From assembly GCA_021613535.1 (NCBI GenBank), contig CP075495.1, positions 15,438,001-15,502,000 on the forward strand: 64,000 nt of DNA. The letters run 5' to 3'. The notes beneath the pieces are model-generated. The model worked only from the letters and a program-made list of their open reading frames with translations, was not told where the DNA came from and did not search any database. Shown in pieces: positions 1,270 through 32,781 of this stretch. Origin of the DNA: Adineta vaga (taxonomy: Eukaryota; Animalia; Rotifera). The stretch's first letter is position 1. Every line of letters begins with the position of its first letter. Made by a program: the position numbers and the translations under genes.

Positions 1270-4200
1270 TTATTGAGTTTCTGTACTCGAAGACACTCGG
1301 GCGGATCGACGACACTGACGAACAAGCTGAAGAACTATACCTATTCCATGCCAAACAATCAATCGTAAAGCAATTGTTAGTCCACCATAGAGTCCTAATA
1401 AAGTCGTCAATATGTAAATGAAATCATTTTGCTTAACATATGAATATTGACATGTTGCAGGAGCACATTCATGAAAATAACTTGAATAATTTGATATATT
1501 AGACCAAGTTTCAATAAAAAGATTATCAATTAACGAACCAATTGTTGTTGTATTTGATATATGTTGAATATTAGCAGATAAGTTGAGAGCTATTAGTGAA
1601 GTTGAAACATTGATCAATGTTGTAAGTATATTTAGACATGTTTGATCATATAGACATTCAAATGTTGATACACGAAGTCCAAAGACTGCTGAACATCCAG
1701 CATTAAAACCTAAAAAATCAGACTGAGTTGATCGATAAAGTGCCACAAATCTTATTATAATTACCTGGAAAAGTAATTGTAGTATTGGTACTCGGTCTCA
1801 AAAAGTTTAATGTTCTTGAACATGTTGACATGCCTGCAGCACAAATACATGTATTATTATTGTATGTAACTGGAACGGTACGAAATACGTAAGATTCTTC
1901 TAAAGTCGAATATGTCATTTTCCAACTCGACATAAATTGATCTTGAAGTTGATTGGATTGATGTGCATTTATAATAAACGTAAATGTATCACGAAAATTC
2001 ATTGGAGTTTGTGTGATTAAAAGATTTATCATTGAGTTGAGTTGTGAATAAAACAAATTTAATGAAATAGTTTCGACACTTATGAGTTTATTGGATAAGA
2101 AATTAGATTTTGATTGATCGATAACATTCTTAGCAAGATTACACAATGATGATAGAAGACGAAATTGTGTGCCAAGTAGAAACCAATCAGGTACCGACCA
2201 AGTAGAACCCATATTATATAGAATTGTAGACCAATTTGATAAAACAAATTGACTCGAACATATTTGATGCATCATAGGTGATAGATCAAGAAATTTCTTG
2301 AATGGAATAGCAATTTGTGTACAAGGACATGTTAATGTTGTTGAATATTGTGAATAAAGATATTCAAATTGATCTACTGTAGGTGATTGAATAGTAAACG
2401 ATTGTGTCTGTTGACTTAATCCAATGGAAAGTGTTATAATAACAATTGCAAATATGAGTAAAATCAAATAGACTCGACTGGCTAATAATTGATAATCACT
2501 AGTTGATTCTGTCTCATAGAAATTAAAGGTTCTAATACTTTTCCATATATATCTAATGAATTCAAAAAACGAACTATGAGTTGATTTTTTATCTATAAAT
2601 ATAGAATAAGTTTTTTTTCTTAAATTGACATTATTTCTATCTTACTAATTTCATTTTGTTGACAATCGTGACAGTAATGATAAATTCGTCGAATTATTTT
2701 CACTAAATATGGAACAATGATACGAAGAATAACTGTGAGTCCACCTAAGAGACCAATAATATTGGTAATAATGAAGATAGGTTGACGTTTCTCAATAATT
2801 GTGTATTTACAAAATTTCGGTTGACATTGAAGATAATGCGAAGCATAATCAACAGTTTCTGTCCAATCTTCAATAAACAATTTTGAGATAATGATTTCAA
2901 GTGTTGTATTCGGCAAAAATTGACTTTTTAGTAAACGATCAAGTGCTGTTTTGTTTGTTATATTAATTGGCGAAAAATACTTATCGAAATCATAAAGACG
3001 CAAATCAATTAACATTTGAATACATGATTCATTGAAGAAACATTCAAGTGTTGACAAAAGAATTGAATCAATAGGAAAACAGCCAACATTTAAACCAGGA
3101 ATTGTATAATTTGGTAATGCTGTACCAAGATGACAACTTGGTGCTGAACAATAAAATCCTTGTGATTTAATACATTGACTTGATATGCCACATGAACATG
3201 TCTCATTATTATTTGTATAAATTTTCGATTGATATCGAATATTCCATGTACCATTGATCTTCTGTGATCTTGGTACAGCATTAGTTGCACCAGCTACAAG
3301 ATATTGATTTAGACGAATAGTATTGTAGACAAGATTAAATAAGGAACTGAATGATTCTGTTGTCTACATAGAATGAAACAAATCATAAAATATTGAAGTG
3401 AAAAGTTAACATATTATTTCTCAATGTTTACCTGTTGTTTAAATTGAGTGAATAGAGCCAATGTTTGTGCATTGAAATCATCTTGTGTTAATGGTTGAGC
3501 ATTTACAAAATTTGTTCTATTAAATACTTCTGTTGAAGTGATTACCATTTCAGTAGCTAGATCACAAAATGTGTTTAGTTGATCGAAAAATGATTGACCA
3601 GTTATTCGAAAGTCGCTTCCAAAAAAAGATGGAGCATTTAAATCACTTGAATTAATCGATTCGAAAGGCCAATATACGAGCCAACCATCTTGTTGAATAA
3701 ATGTACTTTGACATATTTGATGATAACGTGGTTGAATATTCATTATACTCGAATAAATTATTGAAAGATGTTCACATGGACATGATAATGTTGATGAATA
3801 TTTCTCATGAAGTTCTTCAAATTGTAAATGTGTTGGATTGTCTATAGTAATTGTTGTCATACTTTGAAGAAATGATGAATAAATAGTCAAAATTATAATA
3901 CTTATACAGAGAAAAATGATATAAACACGAGTTGAATAAATTCCATGAAGAACATCGACTAACGTCTTTTTAAACAAATTCAGAGTTGTCAATGTTTCTC
4001 TAACTTTCATATAATGTTTATTGATGCGATCTTTCATACCTTAATAATATGAAGAATAAGAAATATTTGATTGAATAGTAAACAATTCAACTTACTGACT
4101 TTATTTTGATTAACTTCCAGTTTTATTTCATTGATTTCATCGATCATTTTTAATGAATCTTTCTTTCTCATTATAAACAAAATAAGAAATGGTGATAAAA

Positions 4201-28747: not shown

Positions 28748-29812
28748 ATGTTTTTTATCATTGTTTTCGTTATCTGCATATATACTTTATCAATTGATGT
28801 AAATGCTTCTAATTGTGATCCTTCGATCAGTTATCCTCCATTAAATCGACCTGGTCCATCTTATACAATTCCACGAAAGAATTTCTCTGAATATTTGATA
28901 TGTTATCCCGGAAAAAATCATCGAAAACGATGGATTTTATTTTTACCAGGTACAACAGAAGAAGTTAAAGAATTATACAGTTGGAATTGGATGAGAATTA
29001 TGGAGAAGACACAATGGCCATTTTGTACATTACAATTACCAAATAAAGGTTTAGGTGATTTACAAATAGCTGCAGAACATATAGTTTATGCAGTACGAAA
29101 AATGTATCGAAAGGCTATGCGTGAGAAAGAGAAAGGTATTCGTTATAAGACAAGAATTCATATCATTGGTCATTCACTTGGTGGTTCACTTCCTCGTTTT
29201 GCAATTCGATTTTGGCCAGATATACGATCAATGATTTATCAATTAATTGCTTTTGGAGCAACAAATCATGGAACATCAATGGCAAATACAGCATGTGAGA
29301 CTTTTCGTTGTCCAGTTTCTGTAACTCAACAACGAATTAATTCGTCATTTGTTTGTGCTATGAATTCATATCAAGAAACGTTTTCTTCAATAAAATATTT
29401 AAATATTCTTTCAAAATTTGATGAAATTGTTCGACCTGTGAATAGTAGTGAAATATATGGAAAACATGTAACAAATATTTATATTCAAGATATTTGTCCA
29501 TTACGAATCTTTTCGGAACATCTTGGCGCAGGAATTTATGATTATTGTGGTTATTTTCTAACAATGAATGCATTACATTCTCGATCATTAAAAAATATTT
29601 CAACAGAAGAATGTTGTGCACAAAAATTAATGCCCGGTATTAATGCATCAACAATAGAATTCTTTTCTAAAGTTATCTATTCAGCTGAAGAACATACAAG
29701 ATATTTACTTATGCATTTTGGTGAAATTAAAAATGAACCAGAATTAAAATGTTCATTTCGAACTGATTGTATTCAAAGAAAACGAAGAGTTGAGCAAACG
29801 ATATTAAGATAA
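28748..29812 (+). CDS. Secreted CalB-like lipase (alpha/beta hydrolase), intronless
   Basis: Signal peptide, LPGT oxyanion region, GDLQIAAE, GHSLGG nucleophile, FWP, DEIV and QDICP...EH. Confidence 0.85.
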   Translation: MFFIIVFVICIYTLSIDVNASNCDPSISYPPLNRPGPSYTIPRKNFSEYLICYPGKNHRKRWILFLPGTTEEVKELYSWNWMRIMEKTQWPFCTLQLPNKGLGDLQIAAEHIVYAVRKMYRKAMREKEKGIRYKTRIHIIGHSLGGSLPRFAIRFWPDIRSMIYQLIAFGATNHGTSMANTACETFRCPVSVTQQRINSSFVCAMNSYQETFSSIKYLNILSKFDEIVRPVNSSEIYGKHVTNIYIQDICPLRIFSEHLGAGIYDYCGYFLTMNALHSRSLKNISTEECCAQKLMPGINASTIEFFSKVIYSAEEHTRYLLMHFGEIKNEPELKCSFRTDCIQRKRRVEQTILR

Positions 29813-30057
29813 TCGATATGAATGAGAATAGTTCTATTTTTATTATCATAATGAATTATAATCCAAAGATATGCACAGGTACATACTTGTGTATAGGTTA
29901 TATCTATGAATAAGAAATACTAATTTTTTATAAATACTTTTTCAAAACAAGCATCTTTATTTGAACGCGAATTAGACAGCTAGTCTGTGCTAGTGTAAAA
30001 GCAAGAATAAAGATGAGCAACAAGTAATAAATGTCCAATAATTGATTGATCAGATTC

Positions 30058-31170
30058 TTACAGCTTCATAATATAGAGCAAAGCAATAAATGGTGGCGTT
30101 GTGTCGATCGAAGTTATAGAAGCTGCGTGTGTATGCGGTTGGCTGCCACCTTCTGCTGCGATCGTATGAGTATGCTGACAACCACCACAACTATTGTAAT
30201 TTTTGGTATTGACCCATCTAGGTGGAGCAGTATTTAGAGGGGCTAAGATAGAAATGAATCTCAGAGAATCATTCCGATCTTTCAACCAATTCAGACTTAC
30301 TTGCACTGTTAGGAGAACAATTCACATCGTAATATATTGCGCCCATATCCTCAATACCTGTACTGCCGCCGTGCGAGTGTGAAGGAATTTGCCCTATATT
30401 AAGTGTAGTGTCAGATATTGTGACAGTTGGCGTCTTAGTTGAAGAACCACCCACCTGTGTTGGTGAGTATTGAGCGCCAGTTCCTCAAAAATCAAATGAA
30501 ACAAAAATCAAAATGTGTTCGTCATATTATGCATACCAGATCCTATTATGAATCGATTGCGCAAATCCGGTGTACCCTGCGTACCATCACAAACAGCCCA
30601 ACCCAAAGGCACCGTTGCGAGCGATCCACTCCTAATTTGTTTTTAAGTAGTTGTCTAATTCAACGATGAAAATGCTTGCAACTTACCATAACATGATAAC
30701 ACCCGTTGGAACAAGTGGTAGTGCTATAAAACAAGAAACATCGAAAGATGTTGAATTCTGTTTACGAATTCATAAACACTTGAGAAAAGAAGTACTTACT
30801 CGTTGTTGATGTCTGAGAAGTGGTGGAAGTAGTATCAGTTGTTGTTGATGTAGTTGATGTCGAAGTAGAAGTAGTTGTTGTCGTTGTAGTTGTAGTTGCT
30901 AAAAATTACATTGCAATATATTTAACTGGTTCTTTTCTCAATTGCAAAAACAATATTGTATGAAATCTAAGTATACTTACTTGGCTCTGGTTTAATGTAC
31001 AAGGTAAGTAAAATACCTAATGCAGTACCACTCAATAGTGTACCAATAAGCATCCATGTGAAAAACCAACAGCAATTGGTGTGCAATAGTTTATCAGACG
31101 TAAATTGAGGCTCTCTTCGTTCTTCAGCACTTGATTTTTGAGAAGTTGAGGAGAAATAAGTTGCTTCCAT
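30058..31170 (-). CDS. Type II membrane protein: TM + Thr/Ser stalk + phage tail-collar/tail-fibre domain, 6 exons, 262 aa
   Basis: Exons 31170-30981, 30898-30800, 30723-30687, 30631-30537, 30483-30301 and 30242-30058 join in frame (789 nt). The C-terminal part reads VPTGVIMLWSG..VPLGWAVCDGTQGTPDLRNRFIIG...QIPSHSH...HTH..GGSQPHTH...PPFIALLYIMKL. Confidence 0.85.
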
Positions 31171-31579
31171 CGTCTTGATTTGACACGAAATATAGGTACT
31201 GTAAATTCGAAAATGACCAGCTCAAATTTATTTGATGAAACATTACAACCTTCTATTCAAAAAAAGATTTCAATTTCGATAAAATTGCAAATTTCATAAT
31301 AGCATTTCTAGGCTTCATTTTCTTTATTCAGTTTTATTAATTCCGTCTCATTTTTTCTTACTCAGGAAGTTTTCAATAATAAAAGTACATTCAAATAACG
31401 TCGAAAGATTTAAAATTGAATTCTCTCGAATATTCAGCAACAATCTCGATATGATCGTATTATCAAATGTTGGATTTCTATTAAATTAATCAACAATACA
31501 AGAAAACAAAACGAGACATATTTAATAAACAAAGAAAAAACATATAAAAAAATATTTTAATCATCATCATCATCATTAA

Positions 31580-32781
31580 TTATTGTTCAAAATATTGTTG
31601 ACGAGCTTTATAATCAAGTTTCAACCATTTTGTCAAAAGAATTATTTTTATAATTTCGATAAATATAATTATTAATTGCATCGGATAATGCATCACCTAA
31701 TGATTGACGATATAAATCATTTGTTGTTAAACGATGAAGTTGTCTTAATGCACGTAATGATAATTTTTCATTCGATGTATTAAAAACTAATGAAGCTAAA
31801 ATATTATTGATAAAAAATGAAAATTCCTAAATGATAAAAATATTATTTTTGATAAAGAAGTCTTTTTCTCTTGATTTACATATGCTGTTACATCTTCGGA
31901 AGCATTTTCTTCAAGATCATAATCACGTTGATCATAAGACGATTTTCTTTGTTCATAAGCTTTTAAACGTAATGATCCAACATCAGGCATTTCATTTAAA
32001 ATCAGATCTTCGAATATTGGATCAGACATGATGATTTTCTGAAAATATTAATGGAAAATTATCAAAGAGAGAGAGAGAGAGAGAGAGAAAATCTTACTTC
32101 AACATGATAAAAATTATTAAATCGTACAGCTAATTGATGTAATCGTAAACCAAGATCACCATGATCGATATTCATTAATTTTTTATCTTTTGTATTTTCA
32201 AAATAAGATCGTAATATATATCGAATTTGATAAAGTATTGATGGCATTTCGAACCATAATGTTCCACTTAAAATAAAAAATGAAATTAGAAATTATTTAT
32301 CAAATTTTTACTTATTAATAATTTGTTCAAGATTTTTTAAACTTTTCTTTGCTGTTGCAATAGATTTTCGCCATTTTTTCATACATTTTTCTTTCTTTTC
32401 AATTAACATTTTCAAATCAACATAATCATTTATATTTTGATGTTGTTCATCAATTGCTTCTTTGATCAATGCTTTTGATTGATCAAGAAATCCTAAATGA
32501 TATGCACAAATAGATGATCGATAAAATCCTTTGAAATTTTCATTTCTTTGTAATTTTAATGATTGTTTTGCGTCTTCATAACCACAATAGAAATCTTTAT
32601 CTTGAATATAAGCAGCTGAACGATTTGAATATAATAAATATAATGGAACTTGATCTTGTTCTTGTAAATTTGTTTCAATAAGTTGAATAGCTTGAGAATA
32701 AGATTGAATAGCTAATGATGATTCTTGTTTAGAATAATATTCATTTCCTTGATTTTTATAATCTAATATTGTTAAAGACAT
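31580..32781 (-). CDS. TPR-repeat protein, about 4 exons
   Basis: KNQGNEYY, AIQSYSQAI, LYSNRSAAY and KGFYR are TPR motifs. Further exons continue to a stop at 31580. Confidence 0.8.

Follow-up and report, generated by a model that had tools for sequence, protein, structure and literature searches.

A spliced membrane protein gene of the rotifer Adineta vaga with a predicted tip domain of phage tail fibres

We analysed a stretch of 64,000 nucleotides (nt) from the genome of the rotifer Adineta vaga (GenBank assembly GCA_021613535.1, contig CP075495.1, positions 15,438,001 to 15,502,000 of the forward strand), referred to below as the window and numbered from its first letter. A gene on its minus strand, running from 31170 to 30058 and here called the tip gene, encodes a protein of 262 amino acids (aa) in which a short N-terminal tail, a transmembrane helix and a stalk precede a C-terminal domain resembling the tips of phage tail fibres. 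The tip gene is a genuine, intron-bearing and transcribed rotifer gene. The explanation we favour, and rate as fairly probable, is that its product is a single-pass membrane protein of the rotifer with a horizontally acquired phage fibre tip, which would form a trimer and bind a ligand outside the cell, a microbial glycan being the most likely one.

The coding region (30058..31170, minus strand) comprises six exons and five introns, and the spliced 789 nt make up 262 codons and a TAA stop. Exon 1 (30981..31170) encodes the N-terminal tail, the transmembrane helix and the first part of the stalk. Exon 2 (30800..30898), 99 nt long and matched in the ortholog of A. ricciae, encodes the Thr/Ser-rich, mucin-like stalk. 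The start of the collar motif (P-x-G-x-I-x-x-W), whose Trp codon is interrupted by intron 3, lies in exon 3 (30687..30723), and the collar core (P-L-G-W-x-x-C-D-G followed by G-T-P-D-L-R-x-R-F) lies in exon 4 (30537..30631), a 95-nt exon kept in A. ricciae and Didymodactylos carnosus. The middle of the tip domain, with the first of its H-x-H motifs, is encoded by exon 5 (30301..30483). Exon 6 (30058..30242) encodes the distal tip with its C-terminal strand (P-P-F-x-A-L-x-Y-I-M-K-L) and ends in the stop codon; the C-terminus encoded there aligns end to end with that of the bacterial fibre Pvc13 (9qgo), to which we return below. The introns measure 82, 76, 55, 53 and 58 nt, all have GT..AG ends, and their guanine-plus-cytosine (GC) content is 23-34%. 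The six in-frame exons and the motifs quoted in a preliminary description, which had been made from the sequence alone, were all found in place, and introns 3, 4 and 5 are the three that it had located within the phage-like domain. The product corresponds to the NCBI entry 'hypothetical protein I4U23_010640 [Adineta vaga]' (P0001, 262 aa), which contains the exon pieces as ordered exact substrings, adjacent pieces being separated by one split-codon residue each.

Splicing was followed in assembled transcript contigs from two independent studies, which inform on splicing and not on expression level or transcript ends. An 808-nt contig from run X1 (study P1) spans 30062-31193 and omits exactly the five introns, which read CT..AC on the plus strand, and a 658-nt contig from run X11 (study P5) has the identical five splice joints. 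The proposed joining of the transmembrane and stalk exons to the collar exons, whose absence from transcripts would by the preliminary description have refuted the proposal, is seen in these contigs, in which all five junctions are present in both studies. At the 5' side the spliced contigs extend to at least 31195. Run X9 yielded an unspliced, genomic form of the gene. The comparison covered positions 29900-31400 and the contigs of four runs. At the 3' end of the tip gene and beyond it (29933-30061) two contig forms, differing at the same 8 positions, occur in all 4 runs; they look like two haplotypes.

The encoded protein begins with a polar tail (residues 1-34) that ends in Cys-Cys. It is followed by the transmembrane helix at residues 35-59 (30994..31068, minus strand), the one strongly hydrophobic stretch of the protein, where the Kyte-Doolittle hydropathy in a 19-residue window reaches its maximum of 1.92 at residues 41-59, the next peak being 1.58; this helix is kept in the orthologs of A. 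ricciae and A. steineri. Ser and Thr together make up 84% of the stalk (residues 60-97), and the remaining 165 aa (residues 98-262) form the phage-like C-terminal domain. A single transmembrane helix, no cleaved signal peptide and a Ser/Thr-rich region next in order are, as judged by hydropathy and composition, the layout of a type II mucin-stalk protein. The same order of tail, transmembrane helix, Thr/Ser stalk and tip is common to three A. ricciae copies, and the A. steineri copies have it likewise as far as their truncated models reach. In paralogs and other relatives with the same tip, hydrophobic, signal-like sequences stand at the N-terminus in place of the anchor, and an outside location of the tip is indirectly supported because of these signal-like N-termini.

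Homology of the C-terminal domain to the receptor-binding domains of phage tail fibres and collars, as proposed earlier, was borne out by the searches, whereas the Pfam Collar family named for it (PF07484) was not reached at its threshold. The full I4U23_010640 sequence scored 17.7 bits (E 0.0036) against a gathering cut-off of 24 bits and matched only positions 1-22 of the 57 in the profile. Searched against Pfam exon by exon, exons 1, 5 and 6 gave nothing useful and the sole weak Collar match came from exon 4 (20.4 bits, E 5e-4); a search against NCBIfam gave no relevant match. The N-terminal collar motif (P-x-G-x-I-x-x-W-x-G ... P-x-G-W-x-x-C-D-G) lies at residues 102-125, and its positions are at least 90% conserved in 120 homologs. 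Among the PHROG profiles, exons 4, 5 and 6 match PHROG 5795 in order (positions 401-432, 433-474 and 503-541; exon 4 alone 7e-8), and the full protein gives 1.2e-25 with PHROG 5795 and 1.8e-21 with PHROG 1800, 'tail collar fiber protein', where the match runs to the profile end. The domain is matched in 151 phage genomes, in 104 of them over at least 80% of its length, with an identity of 31-37% among the matches listed; their annotations read tail fibre, tail or tail collar protein, and in a few cases hypothetical. With few exceptions, the named homologs are fibres from phages that infect Gram-negative bacteria or cyanobacteria, and one close metagenomic homolog belongs to a prophage, where it stands among podovirus-like structural genes adjoining bacterial genes. 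The automatic names given to the orthologs in databases are 'Phage tail collar domain-containing protein' and 'Tail fiber protein'.

A family profile of 148 positions, built from 120 homologous domains, was then compared with solved structures. The best sequence match was Pvc13 (9qgo; 4.9e-32 over all 148 profile positions), the fibre of the PVC injection system of Photorhabdus luminescens. It shares with the rotifer protein the collar motif, both H-x-H motifs and an identical I-M-K-L C-terminus, and it is a trimeric fibre, as is predicted for the rotifer tip. Pvc13 is, however, a bacterial fibre of 434 aa whose N-terminal helical and adenovirus-like repeat parts bind the baseplate; in the rotifer protein the transmembrane helix and the mucin-like stalk replace these parts, and its gene has introns. 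The fibre of Pseudomonas phage Pa223 (9nxk; 1.3e-26) agrees with the rotifer protein in the two H-x-H motifs and in the C-terminal strand, but is a podovirus virion protein with a six-residue collar insertion where the rotifer domain has G-T-P-D-L-R directly. C24 (6ov6; 4.9e-23), the putative long-tail-fibre tip of a Bizionia argentinensis prophage, lacks the first H-x-H and is part of a phage fibre with no membrane anchor; it is called a receptor-binding protein in a passage of PMC11821841 that cites Pellizza et al. 2020. The short tail fibre gp12 of phage T4 (1ocy; 2.7e-4) has the collar motif and an H-x-H aligned with the first one of the rotifer domain, but is distant, is without the last H-x-H and has a longer collar.

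Comparison of folds gave related results. The AlphaFold monomer model has a mean predicted local distance difference test (pLDDT) score of 76.8, falling to 52-56 in the variable region, and a Foldseek search with it returned the Pa223 fibre (2.4e-8). In the VIA search the best match was C24 (Z 8.0 over 128 residues, 30% identity), followed by the Pa223 fibre (Z 7.2), the T4 gp37 tip (2xgf, Z 6.5) and gp12 (Z 5.5 over 64 residues). The top matches are all fibre tips, but their TM scores are about 0.4 and the root-mean-square deviations are high; the query, a monomer model of an intertwined trimer, is ill-suited to such a search. On sequence comparison we assign the C-terminal 165 aa to the short tail-fibre tip family that includes gp12, C24, the Pa223 fibre and Pvc13, and not to the MdpB-like type, which had been named as well. 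Proteins of the MdpB type with a PF07484 domain are present in the same genomes and include a large bdelloid family, described below, with an N-terminal module of about 430 aa. Like the product of the tip gene they have repeated H-x-H motifs and the N-terminal half of the collar motif; they differ from it in matching all 57 Collar positions with 64-82 bits.

The H-x-H motifs, put forward in the preliminary description as metal-binding, proved to be conserved. The first, His176-Ser-His178 (30371..30379, minus strand), is at least 90% conserved in the 120 homologs, as is P174. In the last, His238-Thr-His240 (30127..30135, minus strand), H238 shows no variation and H240 is conserved to at least 90%; Pvc13, the Pa223 fibre and C24 have this motif too. 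In the profile alignment H176 and H178 fall on the H-x-H of T4 gp12 at 445/447 (numbers counted from the printed alignment), which we take to be zinc ligands of gp12. Zinc ligands have reportedly been described in gp12, and this protein is said to bind the core of lipopolysaccharide (LPS). A further motif, C-x-x-C-x-H-x-H (Cys220, Cys223, His225 and His227; 30166..30189, minus strand), was present in 6 of the 120 domains in the alignment, each from a bdelloid, and is thus specific to the bdelloid clade, where it may form an extra metal site.

The assembly state of the tip was modelled with three copies folded together. The interaction prediction score from aligned errors (ipSAE) was 0.85, whereas no control scored above 0.00; at least 80% of the contacts agreed between runs, and the partner pLDDT was at least 76. 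In calibration, 21 of 30 solved homo-pairs and none of 23 single chains came up to the mark set for this score. The trimer suggested earlier is thus predicted by the model, and the predicted interface takes in both conserved H-x-H regions. Residues from about 180 to 230 are poorly conserved and rich in insertions and deletions across the whole family, which fits ligand-contacting loops. It had also been proposed that the Cys-containing segment between the H-x-H motifs is a variable tip. This holds across the family, but there is no excess of variation among the Adineta orthologs, in which the stretch between the H-x-H motifs is 64-73% identical vs. 63-70% for the neighbouring residues 142-171; a hypervariable tip within Adineta is not supported.

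The genome searched for paralogs was a 100.8-Mb assembly of six contigs. The search for bdelloid relatives, as had been advised, returned two A. vaga paralogs of the tip together with named homologs in A. ricciae, A. steineri, D. carnosus and Rotaria sp. One paralog (C3:169340-169693) forms the end of a 598-aa gene, P0269 (I4U23_010856), and has introns 3 and 4 without intron 5. The other (C2:1461501-1461916), on the same chromosome as the tip gene, keeps introns 3, 4 and 5 (exons at 3232-3297, 3347-3439, 3499-3675 and 3744-3920 within G000:C2:1458000-1465000), and its middle motif is without C-x-x-C. A relative of this second paralog in A. steineri (P0154) begins with a signal-like sequence, so that the product of the paralog is probably secreted. 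The A. ricciae ortholog of the tip gene has the same six exons and phases (exons 2-5 of 99, 37, 95 and 183 nt) and is adjoined by the same tetratricopeptide repeat (TPR) gene as in A. vaga, the local order being different. In D. carnosus P0006 an intron likewise interrupts the Trp codon (W|SG) and another follows I-G-S (GS|G); the 95-nt exon is present there too, and intron 5 is absent. The W|SG and GS|G positions are thus common to all bdelloid copies examined, namely the A. vaga paralogs, A. ricciae and D. carnosus, and we conclude that these two introns were gained before the copies diversified. Intron 5 is confined to some paralogs.

In a tree of the 120 domains the 9 bdelloid sequences, from Adineta and Didymodactylos, form one clade with a Shimodaira-Hasegawa-like approximate likelihood ratio (SH-aLRT) support of 99. 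The phylogeny called for in the preliminary description thus groups the bdelloid sequences, but does not settle their sister group and hence the donor. After Adineta, the homologs listed are metagenome proteins, a few named bacterial proteins and one unnamed NCBI entry, with 29-53% identity. No non-bdelloid eukaryote was found among the named best matches, the genomes of monogononts and acanthocephalans lying outside this search. Among the matches listed, the nearest relatives outside rotifers are thus of prokaryotic or phage origin, and the gene is integrated in its host, with introns and expression. A comparison of exons 3-6 of A. vaga with those of A. ricciae gave a ratio of nonsynonymous to synonymous substitution rates (dN/dS) of 0.12, at synonymous sites that are near saturation (proportion of synonymous differences, pS, 0.64). 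Taken together, these comparisons point to an old horizontal capture, followed by intron gain and fusion to a eukaryotic anchor.

Two further relatives, P0012 and P0013, lie on GC-rich contigs and have a coiled-coil region in front of the tip. The GC-rich metagenome contig that holds P0013 also carries a near relative, P0268 (L018:2428-3922), in which a coiled-coil frame is followed by the tip in another frame; this may be a gene split by an intron in a GC-rich organism.

We suggest the following course of events and mode of action. The tip would have been acquired from a phage or a phage-tail-like element before the split of Adineta and Didymodactylos, would then have gained spliceosomal introns and been duplicated, and the copy described here would have been joined to a eukaryotic anchor and stalk. 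The protein would be of type II, with its N-terminus inside and its C-terminus outside the cell, and the stalk, probably O-glycosylated, would keep the tip off the membrane. The display geometry fits such an arrangement: the N-terminus of a phage fibre attaches to the particle and the tip points outward, and here anchor and stalk replace the shaft. By analogy with phage fibres, the trimer of the tip would be held by metal ions on the H-x-H motifs. The variable distal loops would bind a surface ligand, most likely a polysaccharide on microbes that are eaten or resisted. For the predicted ectodomain, the role of a receptor for bacterial surfaces or LPS, proposed in the preliminary description, is plausible.

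Several observations weigh against this explanation. The Pfam Collar match is below threshold, the confidence of the AlphaFold monomer is only moderate, and the trimer score may reflect likeness to, or memory of, solved fibre trimers. The charges flanking the transmembrane helix are ambiguous as to orientation, and a quick tree places a polytomy next to the rotifer clade where its sister group would stand. Finally, the injection system of Pvc13 is thought by its authors to target eukaryotic cells, and homology to it implies no microbial ligand. This last point also favours an alternative in which the display is the same but the ligand lies on eukaryotic cells or on the animal's own matrix, the protein serving in cell-cell, cell-cuticle, egg or substrate adhesion. 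A single-pass protein on a mucin stalk is a typical form of adhesion molecule in animals, which counts for adhesion too. Yet phages of Gram-negative bacteria or cyanobacteria are the source of nearly all the named homologs, which are their fibres, and we regard an adhesive role as rather unlikely, though with a real share of the probability.

The source of the tip is a separate question. A eukaryotic virus (a giant virus, a virophage or similar) or a bacterial phage-tail-like particle might have delivered it instead of a phage directly, and the polytomy next to the rotifer clade, the coiled-coil relatives P0012 and P0013 on their GC-rich contigs and the homologs in bacterial injection systems can all be cited for such a donor. 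On the other hand, the domain occurs in 151 phage genomes, a close homolog sits in a prophage, and no viral genes were found flanking the rotifer tip locus. An origin other than directly from phage accordingly has, in our estimate, about the same modest chance as the adhesive role.

It is improbable that the domain has been kept for a role other than ligand binding, e.g., as a stable module for trimerisation or metal holding in a membrane protein that acts through another part. Conservation falls on the positions of the predicted trimer core and of the H-x-H motifs, and the clade-specific C-x-x-C-x-H-x-H is a possible extra metal site, as such a role would have it. Against this, the remainder of the protein consists only of a short tail, a transmembrane helix and a low-complexity stalk, with no other functional part visible, and the distal region is 64-73% identical between Adineta species in a domain with a dN/dS of 0.12.

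With respect to the genomic setting, the tip gene sits on a 16-Mb contig which corresponds to a chromosome and has ordinary animal genes around it, which answers the concern, raised in the preliminary description, that the contig might be chimeric. The domain exons are GC-richer than their neighbours, as noted there: their GC is 0.46 and their GC at third codon positions (GC3) 0.34, vs. a GC of 0.281 ± 0.033 (maximum 0.353) and a GC3 of 0.131 ± 0.068 in the 35 open frames that the window has with a length of 150 aa or more. Given an old capture, a remnant of donor composition is only one possible cause of the high exon GC; amino-acid content and codon preference are other possible ones. An artefact, be it contamination from bacteria or phages, a chimerically assembled contig or a dead pseudogene, for which the exon GC far above that of the neighbouring frames might speak, is refuted by the chromosomal setting among animal genes, the five spliceosomal introns removed in transcripts, the orthologs of the same structure in A. 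ricciae and the dN/dS of 0.12, and we give it practically no weight.

The tip gene is accompanied in the A. vaga genome by at least 9 canonical Collar domains (e.g., C1:4079130-4079306 and C5:16647979-16648158), which match the Pfam profile over all 57 positions with 64-82 bits. They lie in long open frames (207-756 aa), and H-x-H motifs are numerous in each. Several of them are preceded by a conserved module of about 430 aa, the N-module, and among the proteins listed, about 100 combine it with a Collar tip; they come from Adineta, Rotaria, Didymodactylos and metagenomes. The front end of the paralog P0269 is this same N-module. It carries there a tip of the short type, and we therefore conclude that an exchange between the two types of tip has taken place on a common front end. 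Searches with the N-module (P0002, residues 1-430) gave no Pfam match, nothing at E of 0.001 or below with Foldseek against the PDB, and a TM score of at most 0.37 in the Atlas shape search. Atlas feature matches to aerolysin and ETX/MTX2 reached only 0.78-0.79, which is chance level, and the best result of a wide VIA search (Z 7.9) was among generic sandwiches and helical stalks. A reading of the N-module as a pore-former accordingly gains no support from these searches.

A broader reading, which we offer tentatively as possible, is that bdelloids hold in their germline a repertoire of surface and secreted recognition proteins derived from phage tips, the tip gene encoding a membrane receptor that catches or senses bacteria. 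In such a repertoire tips of two kinds, short ones as in gp12 and C24 and canonical Collar ones, would be combined with host front ends, namely an anchor with mucin stalk, a signal peptide alone or the module of about 430 aa. If true, this would be an animal pattern-recognition system of phage origin. A search of a literature library for tail-collar, tail-fibre or phage-tail proteins in bdelloids, rotifers or Adineta found no relevant paper. Horizontal gene transfer into bdelloids is well known, and most of the cases discussed are enzymes. Here the captured part appears to be the host-recognition device of a phage, under purifying selection since before the split of Adineta and Didymodactylos. 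Few binders of bacterial surfaces are as specific as the tips of phage fibres, and a tip that still binds such a surface would be a ready-made animal receptor for bacteria. The gene also offers a dated case of intron gain within a foreign domain, with two positions in all copies examined and a third in some paralogs.

Two neighbours of the tip gene in the window were noted as well. Just downstream of it, an intron-free frame of 354 aa on the plus strand (28748-29812) has a hydrophobic N-terminus and a Lipase_2 match over the threshold (23.8 vs. 20.3 bits); it may be another foreign gene. The TPR gene (31583-32781, minus strand) lies upstream of the tip gene in A. vaga and downstream of it, on the same strand, in A. 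ricciae (L020:5157-6899), which is a local swap of gene order.

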